64,000 bases of DNA from Zygnema circumcarinatum SAG 698-1b (Eukaryota > Plantae > Zygnematophyceae). The DNA is taken from contig CM074816.1 of NCBI GenBank assembly GCA_037447605.1, positions 1,131,873-1,195,872 on the forward strand, in the 5' to 3' direction. This document shows positions 2,609 to 33,134 of this stretch, piece after piece; the stretch's first letter is position 1; each line of letters begins with the position of its first letter. The position numbers were made by a program, and so were the translations under genes. The notes below the pieces were generated by a model. The model worked only from the letters and a program-made list of their open reading frames with translations, ran no database searches and had not been told where the DNA came from.

Positions 2609-2662
2609 CCAATGGCTACCCGCCACGTGTACAATTCTACCCACGTGGCGAGTAGCCATTGG
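2609..2662. promoter_or_regulatory. Inverted pair of CCAAT-N9-CCACG elements upstream of the SCCPDH-like gene
   Basis: CCAAT ggctacccg CCACG N16 CGTGG cgagtagcc ATTGG, ending ~120 bp before ATG 2781. Confidence 0.6.
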
Positions 2663-2780
2663 TGCTCCTGCCGACTGTTGCCAAACGCGGGAGGTGCCTC
2701 TCGGGGCGCCCGCCCAGCTTGGCCGAGGCCCCAGAGTTGCCACGTGGCGCACGGCGAGCGCGCCACGTGTCCTGACAGCC

Positions 2781-5700
2781 ATGGCGGCAGGGGGCACGGA
2801 CGCGGTGATATTCGGCGCCACGGGCTTCACGGGGCGGCGCGTGCTGCACGCGTGGCTGCAGGCGGGGGGGGCAGGTGGGGAAATTTTTGGAGTTCAGGCA
2901 ATCTCGGGGTGCCATGGAAGCACTGAAGCTTTTTTTTGGAACGTTTTATTGTTTTTTGCCTGTCGATAAACTACTGTATTGATCATAGTGAGCCTTCTCC
3001 TTTACATCTTTCAACCTTAAAAAGAACCGAACCTTAATCTAAAGCCGTATTTCGAGACCTCCCCGGAGCCCTCAGGTTCTGAAGATTAGGGTTTCCATGC
3101 GCGCGCAGAAGGGAGCTGGAGTGTGGCCATAGCGGGCCGCAGCCGCAGCCGGCTCGAGGACGTCCTCCAATGGGCGGGTGCCACGGAGGACGAGGTGCCC
3201 GTCATCATTGCAGACGTGGACAGCCGCCAATCGCTGGACGACATGTGTCGCCGCACCAAGGTGGTGCTCAACTGCGTGGGACCCTTCAGGTGGGAGCTGC
3301 TCTGGCCATTCAGGGATGGAGAAAAGGAGGGAGAGAAGGGAGGGAGAGAAGGGAGGGAGAGAGGGAGGAGGTAGGGAGGAGAGAGGGAGGAGGGAGGGAA
3401 GGGAGGGAGAGAAGGAGGAGGTAGGGAGGGAGAGAGGGAGGAGGTAGGGAGGGAGAGAGGTAGGAGGGAGGGAAGGGAGGGAGAGAGGGAGGAGGAGAGG
3501 GAGGAAGGGAGGGAGAGAGGAGGGAGGTAGGGAGGGAGAGAGGGAGGGAGGCAGAGTGAGGGCAAGAGAGGAGAGAGAGAGGGGAGGGAAGAAGGGGACG
3601 GAGAAAAGGAGGTTCTGGGGGAGGGAGGGGCAGGGAGGTGGATTGGGTAGGGAAAGGAAGATGGACAGGGTAGAGAGGATAGTGAGGGGGAGGAGTGAGA
3701 AGCACTGATAGTGAAAGAGACTAGGGAGGCAGTGAGTCTGTGAGAGAGGGAGAGCGAGAGAGATAGAGAGAGTGAGGGGGAGAAAGAGAGAGAAGCAATG
3801 GACATTATCATTTCTGCCAAACATGTATCTTATCGTTAACGGAATAATTTTTTCATGGATATAGGAAGTACGGCGAGCCTGTTGTTGCGGCGTGTGTGCA
3901 AGCGGGAGTGGACTATTTGGATGTGTGTGGAGAGCCGGAATTTATGGAGCGAATGGAATCGCTGTATTCCGACGCAGCGGAGCAAAATGGAGCTCTCATT
4001 TCGTCAGCTTGTGGCTTTGACTCAGTGCCGGCAGACCTCGGGGTTATCCATGCAGTGCGTGAAATTCCAACCCTAAACTGAAGGCATGGAAATGCAAACC
4101 TTGCAGTTCTGGTTATTCACTTTGAGAGCTATTCGAGGACAAAACTGTCCTCAGATAGCTTTGGGAGCAAGTTTGAATCATGGGCACAATTGGAAAGACT
4201 CCAGTTCAATTATTTTTGCCTGCAACCAAACATTCAGACGGGCTCAGTTTCATTCAACCATTCACTTGAAACTGCGAAAATCTGTACATGTTAGGAAACT
4301 CTAATCCTAAACTGTGACTAATGTAACTACTGTAACTAATGTAACTAATGTAACTAATGAAGGCATATGGAACCGTTGAAGGCAGTGAACCAGTTTTCAG
4401 CAATCGCTGATGATAGAAGATGTCTCCCTCCATGCCTCCCTTCTCCTCTTTTGAGTTAATTTATTATCTGTTTTTTTTACCTTCTATCAAATGAGCAGGC
4501 CAGTCAGTTCACGCCACCTGGCGCTCCGAGCACAGTGGAATCCTTCCTAACGATAAAGGCGGCCAATGGGATGAGAGCAAATTATGCCACGTGGGAGTCC
4601 CTAGTGGAAGGGCTGGGAAGCGCAGCCAACTTAAGGTAAGGACCACTCTCTCTCTTTCCCTCTCTCTTTCTTTCTCTCGCTCTCTCTCTCTCTCTCTCTC
4701 TTTCTCTCTCCCCTGCCCTTTTCCCTCCGATCACTCTCTCCTTTGCGCTCTCTCGCTTCTCATGCCTTCTCACTTTTGCATTCTGTGCCCTCTCACGATC
4801 TCTCTCTCTCAATTATATTTGAGATATAAGAAACTTGAAATTGAGTGGGAGAGTGAGGACAGAGAGGAGAAGAGGGGGAAGAGGTTTGGCCCCATGAGAG
4901 TTACTTTCTGAATTCTGTTGCTTGCTTCATTCGTTATTTCGCACTTTGCATTGTAAAACCCCTAAGCGCCCTTAAACCCTAATTTATTCTGAATTCTAAC
5001 AGTATGAAAGCATCTAAGTTAAGCATCTTCAAACCCTAATTTTTGTCTTTGTCCAGGAAGGCGCGTGGAAGTCGCCCAAAACGACAACCTCTCCCAATTC
5101 CTGGGCAGCCCCTAAAAAGAAAAGAAGGGCCGTACTTTGAAAAAAGAACAAAAACTTTTTGTTTGCCCTTTCCCGGTGCCGATGCTTCCGTAGTTCGCAG
5201 AACAATGCAAAAACTGTCTGTTCAAGGGAGCTCCGGGCAGGAGGGAAATTTGTCCGCGGGCAGTTTTGGGGGAGAAGGAAAATTTCCAGTCCTGCCCGTG
5301 CACTATGCGGCGTACATGACTGTGCCGTCCCGTTGGAGTCTTTTTCTGCTCTCAATTTTCGGCGGAATTTTAAAGCTTTTAGCCCCTTTTAAATGGGGTC
5401 GTAGGCTACTGTTGAAATATCCCGAATTCTTCACGTATGGAATTTTCTCAAGAAAAGGTGACAGAAGCCCAGCTTGGGATTTTTCTGAATGACTTTTTGA
5501 AAGCACCTTCATAAAGTCAAATTCAACCTTAATGAAGTCAAAATCAACCTTAATAGAGTCGCATCTCTCCCCCAACCTCTTCCCTCACTCCCCCTTTCTC
5601 GAAAAAACAATGAACCGACTTTCTGTGTTCCATGTTACGACCATGGTTTGGGTTTTCCGTAAACTCACTTTCAGGTCCTACAAAGGAGCAGATGATGGGA

Positions 5701-6322
5701 ACCTCCTTTTCCTTCCTTTTCATTGCTCGTGGGTTTACTGACGTCAGCAATTCTGGCAGTAATCTGCCGGACCGCGAGGTTACCACACTTGTCACCGGTC
5801 CTGTAAGTTCCCCCCCTTCAATTTTTATTTTTTTTATGTTTAACAGTCCTGCCCTGTTTCAGTTTTTGCTGCCCAGTGCGATTGTCCGTTTCTTCCTTTT
5901 GTGGGGGAGGGAATGGTTGGAACCTCTCTCTATTCCCGAACTCACAACCCGATAACTGTTCTATGCTGTTTAGTTTCAGTATATCTTCAAAATGCGGGAG
6001 GCAATGACTTGGGTCATGATAAACGATGTATGATGTTTGTGATGATGTCATGATGTATGATGAATGCTGTGTGATGATGTCATGATGTATGATGTGTGGT
6101 GACATCGGTGACATACTTCCCCGGATGATGTCGCAGGAGCCCGGGTATGTCGCCACGCCCATCATCATCGTGCAGTGCGCCTTGGTGCTGTTGAGGGAGA
6201 GGGCGCGTCTCCCCAAGGGAGGGGTCTGCACGCCGGGGGCGCTGTTTGCTGCAACGGACCTGTGCGAACGGCTGCATAGAAACGGGATCTCATTTAACGT
6301 CGTCACTGAGACGGCGCTGTAA
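2781..6322 (+). CDS. Saccharopine dehydrogenase-like oxidoreductase (SCCPDH family), 7 exons
   Basis: Exons 2781-2874, 3109-3289, 3865-4054, 4499-4635, 5057-5457, 5675-5802 and 6137-6322 splice in frame. Motifs: VIFGATGFTG (Rossmann fold), AIAGRS, VVLNCVGPFR, YGEPVV, YLDVCGEPEFME, SACGFDSVPADLG, GPEPGYVATPIIIVQCA, GGVCTPG. Confidence 0.92.
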
Positions 6323-31602: not shown

Positions 31603-31697
31603 CCGAGTTCGACCGCCCCGCCCCGAGCACCGACGCAACCGACCGACCGGCCGACAGCGCCGTCAACCGCAACCGAAATGGGGCGAACATTTATACT

Positions 31698-32040
31698 AAA
31701 CCAAACCGAACGGAACGGAGCGAAACGGTACAGAACGGGACGGACCGGTCAGGAACGGGACTGGGGACATGTAGAGCGGAAACACCCTCGGGCTGGAAGG
31801 GTCAATACGATACGGTACCGAGCAGTACGATACAGTAATCGTGAGATACGATAGAATACTGAGAGATATGAGACAGTATCGAGCGATTTTATACAATACC
31901 AAGAGATACGCTTCAGTATCTATAGATACGATATAATATCGAAAAAACGGTATATTATTTGTCAATACGATACATTACGGAGCAATACGATGCAGTACCG
32001 AGCAATCCGCTAAATTTTCAAACGATACGATACAGTACCG
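31698..32040 (+). repeat. Two adjacent degenerate pentamer satellites: (GAACG)n at 31698-31765 and (ATACG/GATAC)n at 31803-32040
   Basis: Runs such as CCGAACGGAACGGAGCGAAACGG and GATACGATACAGTACCG are visible directly. Confidence 0.7.
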
Positions 32041-33080
32041 TGACCAGCCCGAACGGTCCCTCCGTGAAGCGCCGAGGAGGTCGATCTCACAGGCCACTCA
32101 CAGCTCGCCACGTGGCGATCTCAATCCGCACAATCCTTTCATGAAACCCTCGCGGATACCCTTCGACGCCGCCTCCAATCACAGCGTTGGGCAGGGAAGG
32201 AAAGCCTACGTGGCGCGCCGTGATTGGTTTTAAACTCTGCCGCCCGGGGATCTTCCAATAAGTGGCCGCCCACGAATGGGCAGCGTCGCGACACGTCACC
32301 GACACCGACATTGATGTCATAGGGGAAGGTCCTGGAAGCTCGAGTTTGTCGGCGCATGTCGGTCACTTGAAGGACAGCAAACTGTACGAATAGTTCCACA
32401 AGTCAGTCGCCACGTGTCCATGTGTCCGCACCACAGACGAGGCCCCGATTGTATGCTGAGCTGGCACCGTACGGTGACGGCCAGCGCGGACAGCGCCTGT
32501 CCGTTACTCCGCTTCGATTTTTTTTTCTGGTTCAATTTTTTATGTCGTTCTAAATCTGATCTGCCTAAACGGAAACAAATTAAGTACCGCGCATAGACAA
32601 TTTTATATATCGGACATGTTTGTCAACGGTATTTCTTCTAAAAAGAGTGGTTTCCTTTTCCCTCTGCCCTAAAATTACCGACAAATTCAGTTCTTGCTTG
32701 ATAACTACCAATTGAAGAAATTATTTAGTCTAGAAACTGTACTGTGCAAACCTTTTCTTCAATCTAATAAATCAATACATGAGTATTATTTTTTTAAATT
32801 CGTCTGTAAACAAGTTATTTGCATTATGTTCATTAAAATTTTGGATACGACGTTGTTAAAAAAATATATAAATAAAAATGTTTCGGAATTACGGAGAATG
32901 CTTGACAGTTATTGGCTGATTTTTATATGTGATATCAGTATATTCTCACTGCCAAGAATGGGGCAAGACGTATACTGATTCGGAACCCAGCCAACCCTCC
33001 CTTTTGTCGATTTTCCGCGGCTGTGGGACTGGGAGAAGTGAGCCCCTCCCCCCGCCCTCCAAACTGCACGCGACCATCAG

Positions 33081-33134
33081 CCAATGGCGATGTGCCACGT
33101 CGTCAATATTGTACACGTGGCGAACGTCTATTGG
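33081..33134. promoter_or_regulatory. Inverted pair of CCAAT-N9-CCACG elements upstream of glutamine synthetase
   Basis: CCAAT ggcgatgtg CCACG N16 CGTGG cgaacgtct ATTGG, ending ~155 bp before ATG 33290. Confidence 0.6.

Follow-up and report, generated by a model that had tools for sequence, protein, structure and literature searches.

A fixed-spacing CCAAT/G-box composite in Zygnema circumcarinatum as a candidate proximal promoter module

Why does the sequence of a known endoplasmic reticulum (ER) stress response element (ERSE) recur next to algal genes that are not ER chaperones? The question is raised by a stretch of 64,000 nt of Zygnema circumcarinatum SAG 698-1b (contig CM074816.1, positions 1,131,873 to 1,195,872), hereafter the window, along which the composite CCAAT-N9-CCACG (N is any base) is found repeatedly. 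The ERSE has this sequence and is recognized by NF-Y together with ATF6/XBP1, and the plant element (pERSE) is CCAAT-N10-CACG, recognized by bZIP28 with NF-YA4/B3/C2 (PMC3645738). An earlier note on this DNA had offered two other readings, a general promoter code and the footprint of an old mobile repeat. Here it is reported that the composite is over-represented at a single spacing, that its consensus extends beyond the ERSE core and that most of its perfect copies stand in promoter positions. The probable explanation, on balance, is a composite module for NF-Y and an ACGT-core dimer (bZIP or bHLH) that serves ordinary genes as a part of their proximal promoters.

Spacing and extended consensus of the composite

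Pattern searches on both strands found 11 perfect copies of CCAAT-N9-CCACG in the window, which start at 2609+, 2644-, 3167+, 7748+, 12170+, 23610+, 23716+, 23934-, 32209-, 33081+, and 33116-. Ten of these had been listed in the earlier note, and all ten were recovered at the same coordinates and on the same strands; the copy at 3167(+) had been missed. The composite is non-random, as had been claimed. Dinucleotide-preserving shuffles (n = 100, with at most one copy in any shuffle) give an expectation of 0.09 copies, and the excess is about 100-fold. The earlier note had also proposed counting the composite over a range of spacings, and within the window this count has a sharp peak. At a gap of k = 9 there are 11 copies, and at every other k from 0 to 30 there is one or none. 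When up to one mismatch is allowed, CCAAT-N8-GCCACGT has 24 copies vs. 0–3 for other spacings. CCAAT-N10-CACGTG occurs 7 times at k = 10 vs. 0–3 times at other k, a distance within the 10–12 bp that separate CCAAT from the E-box (CACGTG) at human NF-Y sites with USF1/2 and MAX (PMC4889920). CCAAT-N11-ACGT occurs 10 times.

Among the 8-mers of the window, GCCACGTG ranks second in over-representation, with 57 occurrences vs. 3.3 expected under a third-order Markov model. The excess of the composite survives when the abundance of G-boxes is taken into account. CCAAT lies exactly 8 bases upstream at 10 of the 71 oriented GCCACGT sites, and all remaining offsets in the range 0–40 together contribute 4 matches. 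The signal is therefore no by-product of G-box abundance. The over-representation of the composite is confirmed as real and spacing-specific.

The conserved sequence is longer than the pattern that was searched. The base before CCACG is G in all 11 perfect copies and the base after it is T in 10, the exception being 3167, which has G. A pyrimidine (Y) precedes GCCACGT in 24/24 copies of the set with up to one mismatch, at a position that lies outside the search pattern. Directly after CCAAT, C or G (S) at +1 and A or G (R) at +2 are each found in 22 of these 24 copies (10/11 among the perfect ones), compared with 63% and 58% after every CCAAT in the window. Because these unsearched positions are conserved, the full motif is CCAAT-S-R-N5-Y-GCCACGT(G), of 20 bases, and not only CCAAT-N9-CCACG. 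The N8 spacers vary from locus to locus. The CCAAT half carries the 3' flank of the extended NF-Y consensus, which has C/G and then A/G directly 3' of CCAAT. The second half is the core of the plant G-box/abscisic acid response element (ABRE). Seven of the 11 perfect copies contain the palindromic G-box CACGTG, and two contain CCACGTC.

Perfect copies face each other in two 54-bp mirror dyads, one upstream of an SCCPDH-like gene and one upstream of a putative GS gene (Table 1). The two dyads have identical geometry, in which the CCAAT boxes flank an inner pair of G-boxes, and unrelated spacers. The arms of the SCCPDH dyad are 21 nt long and complementary at 20/21 bases (95%), with a single-strand folding energy of -22.6 kcal/mol vs. 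only -11.7 kcal/mol for the GS dyad. Since the GS dyad folds far less stably, arm complementarity is not conserved, and a cruciform or hairpin was rejected as the conserved feature. What recurs in the dyads is the position of the boxes. A third dyad is decayed: the arm at 32175(+), which faces a perfect copy, has kept CCAAT and a similar spacer and has lost the G-box. The stretch of about 230 bp downstream of it (32290–32530) has further ACGT boxes (32294, 32410) and a T-run at its end. A search of this region against Rfam returned nothing at the gathering threshold, and the stretch is possibly a small unannotated transcript.

Placement of the copies relative to genes and RNA contigs

Seven of the 11 perfect copies are in promoter positions, as the two dyads and three single modules. 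The SCCPDH dyad precedes the ATG of the SCCPDH-like gene, at 2781, by 119–172 bp, and the GS dyad lies 156–209 bp upstream of an ATG at 33290, with a CT-rich tract following the dyad. This ATG opens an Ala/Ser-rich exon, the putative GS transit-peptide exon, and an exon for the GS N-domain lies downstream of it at about 35825–35975. Joined, the two would form a putative plastid GS gene. In a promoter-proximal NF-Y composite, CCAAT would be expected roughly 50–100 bp before the transcript start. Measured from CCAAT, the distance to the contig end is 65 bp for the NHL/LEA_2 gene described next, which fits, the distance to the ATG is 119 bp for SCCPDH and 156 bp for GS, which is consistent, and 4/11 copies lie elsewhere.

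The three single modules were placed with RNA contigs from four public runs, mapped on 20001–26000. These contigs have canonical spliced joints and hence represent RNA. The joint 24308/24808 of the NHL gene, in which a LEA_2 domain was found, is present in all four runs. On the other side, a TAD3-like gene on the minus strand has exons at 20242–20339, 20790–20870, 21540–21675, 21807–21880, 22188–22454, and 22602–22706. Its 5'-most spliced exon is attached to 22706 by a single contig from run X11 (depth 8), in which the shorter side of the joint has 26 letters, and contigs of lower depth extend the transcript to 23609, adjoining the copy at 23610. The copies at 23610 and 23716 are thus upstream of the first, non-coding exon of this gene. 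Because the RNA contigs put gene 5' ends beside them, the copies at 23610, 23716, and 23934 occupy a divergent promoter region. Each has its CCAAT end toward the nearer gene. In the tandem array that starts at 23716 the first unit (23716–23734) is perfect; in later units, which keep the spacer, ACGT has become ATGT, or CCAAT has become CCAAC or CAAT.

Table 1. Copies of the composite and associated exons, ordered by position in the window
Feature	Positions	Strand	Remarks
54-bp mirror dyad, SCCPDH-like	2609..2662		facing modules 2609+ and 2644-
Perfect copy in SCCPDH-like coding exon 2	3167..3185	+	Sacchrp_dh_NADP domain spans these residues
Perfect module at GH32 splice acceptor	7748..7766	+	antisense to GH32 invertase gene
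One-mismatch module (CCGCGT)	8020..8039	+	GH32 coding exon, antisense to gene
Single module, palindromic G-box	12170..12188	+	85 bp upstream of tRNA-Gly(GCC) 12273-12344
Two one-mismatch modules (CCATT, CTAAT)	20345..20380		one common palindromic G-box; 3' end of TAD3-like intron
5'-most spliced exon, TAD3-like gene	23069..23224	-	joined to 22706
Single module	23610..23628	+	CCAAT end abuts 5'-most contig (23203-23609) of TAD3-like gene
Tandem array	23716..23876	+	~5 units of ~32 bp from one module
Single module	23934..23952	-	CCAAT (23948-23952) 65 bp upstream of NHL 5'-most contig end, 24017
NHL/LEA_2 exon 1	24017..24308	+	CT-rich 5' untranslated region (UTR); GT..AG splice to exon 2 at 24808
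Decayed dyad, 53 bp	32175..32227		arm 32209(-) perfect
54-bp mirror dyad, putative GS	33081..33134		modules 33081+ and 33116-, unrelated spacers

The TAD3 identity of the minus-strand gene is unconfirmed: Pfam gave only a faint match to dCMP_cyt_deam_1 (E 0.31), and a PDB search gave no match. Its introns include 20340–20789 and 22707–23068, and its 5' UTR contains at least two introns. The ATG at 20348, which opens its long open reading frame (ORF), is intronic, 9 nt upstream of an acceptor, and the ATG of the gene is likely in exon 22188–22454.

The copy at 7748 has its CCAAT half in the coding exon 7668–7758 of the GH32 invertase gene and its G-box half at the end of the intron, so that the terminal AG of the intron falls within the module. 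Here, as for the other spliced genes, exons were searched singly. Exons 7902–8156 and 7281–7424 match plant GH32 structures with E values of 3e-7 and 8e-13 and align with chain residues 401–453 and 484–523. The 30-residue exon 7668–7758 gave no match when searched alone against PDB. It probably belongs to GH32, given its flanking exons, the length of the gap, the splice signals and the CSDQSRSS motif; the exon continues CSDQSR|SSL, which we take to be a plant invertase motif. The gene (minus strand; 10080–10530 and 7900–8200) has an N-terminal tail and a hydrophobic stretch, a vacuolar-type layout. Its coding exons are unusually rich in G-boxes, and two adjacent ones, for example, encode DTWQTRV, while another pair encodes a stretch of 11 residues. 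The copy at 12170 lies 1.64 kb upstream of the GH32 ATG (10526, minus strand) in addition to its place near the tRNA gene.

Plant-telomere-like repeats (TTTAGGG variants) occur window-wide, for example at 7540–7650, 20885–21490, 24570–24680, 27440–27880, and 60930–61450, and AACCCTAA is the top over-represented 8-mer (67 vs. 3 expected). Where gene structure is readable (7540–7650, 20885–21490, 24570–24680) they are intronic, and they interrupt RNA contigs. Long CT/GA low-complexity tracts (24020–24130, 33225–33275, 3300–3800, 10925–11830, and many more) are found directly downstream of promoter modules, in 5' UTRs, and in introns. They prevail in the list of six-frame ORFs, and transcript assemblies are broken at them. 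The assembly has a gap of 10 N at 45696–45705.

Candidate readers of the composite and competing explanations

The composite is interpreted as a joint binding site. The distance between a CCAAT with NF-Y-type flanks (CCAAT-S-R) and the plant G-box (Y-GCCACGT-G) is rigid, and ten bases separate CCAAT from CACGTG. NF-Y, a histone-fold factor, would dock beside a dimer that recognizes the ACGT core (a G-box bZIP, or perhaps a bHLH), each would stabilize the other, and the fixed spacing would give the two a fixed helical register. The CCAAT end would face the gene, about 50–65 bp from the transcript start, and the cooperatively bound module would have promoter activity. The module is often doubled into the 54-bp mirror dyad with G-boxes inside and CCAAT outside. 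Boxes and distance are conserved while spacers and flanks are unrelated, as is expected of protein binding sites. The same arrangement is found at the ER stress element and at mammalian NF-Y/USF sites, which makes a mechanism of NF-Y with an ACGT-core dimer the most likely one.

Several observations weigh against a proximal-promoter role. Two of the 11 perfect copies (3167 and 7748) are intragenic, in a coding exon and at a splice site, as are several one-mismatch copies; with the latter, intragenic copies in both orientations are found at 3167, 7748, 8020, 10215, 19526, 19710, and 51375. They are confined to the module spacing and hence are not due to chance, and a proximal-promoter role leaves them unexplained. 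The copy at 12170 adjoins a Pol III gene, and no gene was recognized near the decayed dyad that contains the copy at 32209. The module is present in a minority of the promoters of the window, and no NF-Y or bZIP gene is encoded within it. The transcript start is estimated for one gene only, NHL, from assembled RNA contigs that end at a low-complexity CT tract, and such contigs give neither exact transcript starts nor strand. The earlier statement that the copies lie mostly upstream of genes is correct for 7/11 copies; it fails for the two intragenic ones and for the orphan at 32209, and for tRNA-Gly it is positional only.

The intragenic copies could be explained by a different, possibly lineage-specific reader, such as one large factor, or a factor that acts on chromatin or at boundaries, which perhaps marks sites other than promoters. 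Such a reader would account for copies that are exonic, at a splice site and in both orientations, and the strict pyrimidine before GCCACGT is absent from the classic ERSE definition. Against this, each half of the composite, its flanks included, corresponds to a factor site that has long been known and is widely conserved, the spacing is the one documented for NF-Y with ATF6, bZIP28, and USF, and the position is promoter-proximal at the genes where it can be checked. We regard another reader as unlikely.

A little less likely still is the proposal that the copies stem from duplication or from mobile elements (miniature inverted-repeat transposable elements, foldback cargo, or tandem duplication) and for the most part have no function today. 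Local duplication and decay do occur. In the array at 23716–23876 one module was copied about five times and its ACGT core then decayed, the arms of the SCCPDH dyad are nearly identical, and 7/9 one-mismatch changes in the G-box half fall on its CpG, which suggests turnover. However, when 250-bp flanks were compared with the window by BLAST, the only matches were microsatellites, the tandem array and an unrelated repeat some 95 nt long, on which ground a transposon origin within the window was rejected. This repeat is found at three loci, 2435–2525 (+), 41060–41150 (+), and 62300–62400 (-), and contains a small ORF, MA(R/M)PSN(E/V)H... Its copy at 2435–2525 stops about 85 bp before the SCCPDH dyad, its other copies are free of dyads, and an alignment of the three copies does not include the dyad. 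Neither shared flanks nor terminal repeats nor extended inverted repeats around the dyads were found by the window BLAST and an inverted-repeat search. Apart from the tandem array, N8 spacers and flanks are dissimilar between loci, and neutral relics would not be expected to retain an exact spacing and extra conserved positions while losing all else. As neither flanks nor spacers are related from one locus to another, the module does not appear to be transposon debris or the relic of a repeat family in this window, and the idea of an old mobile repeat finds no support here beyond one local tandem array.

A true ER stress response element, with NF-Y and bZIP28/bZIP60 (ATF6/XBP1-type) switching on genes in the unfolded-protein response, is very unlikely: all 11 perfect copies match the ERSE and pERSE consensus exactly and the two with CCACGTC are nearer to the ATF6-type half-site, but 7/11 have the palindromic CACGTG typical of general G-box factors, about 24 module-like sites per 64 kb are far beyond the need of a dedicated stress regulon, and the genes adjoining the copies (SCCPDH-like, GH32 invertase, tRNA-Gly, TAD3-like multi-exon, NHL/LEA_2 and putative plastid GS) include no ER chaperone or component of ER-associated degradation and hence no promoter of an unfolded-protein response target. 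The earlier note was right that none of the neighboring genes is an ER chaperone. With these neighbors and the positions relative to RNA contigs, a promoter module fits better than a switch used only in ER stress. That part of the suggested general promoter code stands; the word general overstates it, since G-boxes without a CCAAT partner are found at several promoters of the window (CapA-like, DUF1995, and FBPase).

Related systems and biological meaning

Three known systems resemble the composite. The ERSE and plant ERSE-I share its core, its spacing and, for the copies that stand in promoters, a promoter-proximal position, and the G-box-containing version of plant ERSE-I requires both boxes intact (PMC3645738; PMC3602376). 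The composite differs in that the genes it adjoins are ordinary metabolic and housekeeping ones, its frequency is about 100 times too high and some copies are exonic, and in that it has the extended consensus (S-R, Y-G, mostly full CACGTG) and often takes the form of the 54-bp mirror dyad. The mammalian NF-Y/E-box composite (USF1/2, MAX) has the same two boxes and the 10-bp gap. It is found at many non-stress promoters and also in repeats such as LTR12 (PMC4889920). There the partner is a bHLH-ZIP protein, whereas for the plant lineage a G-box bZIP is no less likely a partner, and the window shows the 10-bp class only and no 12-bp class. The third system is the plant G-box/ABRE with a coupling element and the NF-Y-bZIP partnership (HY5, ABFs, bZIP67), to which the G-box flanks GCCACGTGGC and ACGTGTC, of ABRE/G-box type, correspond. 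Yeast two-hybrid assays show Arabidopsis NF-YC to bind ABF1-4 and HY5, CCAAT has been proposed as a coupling element for the G-box/ABRE, and NF-Y and bZIP proteins have been suggested to be partners in general (PMC3602376). In the window the spacing is invariant, whereas the land-plant literature that was compared describes no equally strong genome-wide spacing rule. The literature search found no report of the mirror-dyad form, nor any paper that describes the composite as a promoter element of general use in streptophyte algae.

Metagenome contigs were searched for the dyad. The strict 24-base pattern gave no matches and the relaxed 20-base pattern gave one, at 8504–8557 of a contig (L001) that is GC-rich and intron-poor, with long ORFs, one of them a PHYLLO-like fusion and another with a Las1 domain. 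Las1 is taken as eukaryotic, and the contig is probably from a green alga. Its dyad is 54 bp long, with the same geometry and nearly identical arms, and precedes the first in-frame ATG of an ORF with an fn3 domain by 50–103 bp. One match is about the chance level for 20 fixed bases in such a collection, and it is thus a lead only.

A bolder proposal can be formulated, which we consider speculative and improbable. In the green lineage the 54-bp dyad would serve as a core-promoter unit that is bidirectional by nature and replaces TATA/Inr-type elements, with transcripts starting about 50–65 bp beyond each CCAAT. The exonic and splice-site copies would be internal promoters or enhancers, and the match on L001 would mean that the architecture predates the split of streptophytes and chlorophytes.

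The probable reading remains that of a module for NF-Y and an ACGT-core dimer in the proximal promoters of ordinary genes. The module would supply a testable cis-regulatory basis for the "generalizable NF-Y-bZIP relationship" of Kumimoto et al., which comes from Arabidopsis genetics. The 20- or 54-bp module may be of use as a compact promoter part for algal engineering and as a marker for promoter annotation in this genome. If promoters of this alga, which is close to land plants, are by default built on NF-Y with a G-box factor, the ER stress element of animals and Arabidopsis would be a specialized use of an older general module for NF-Y and ACGT factors.

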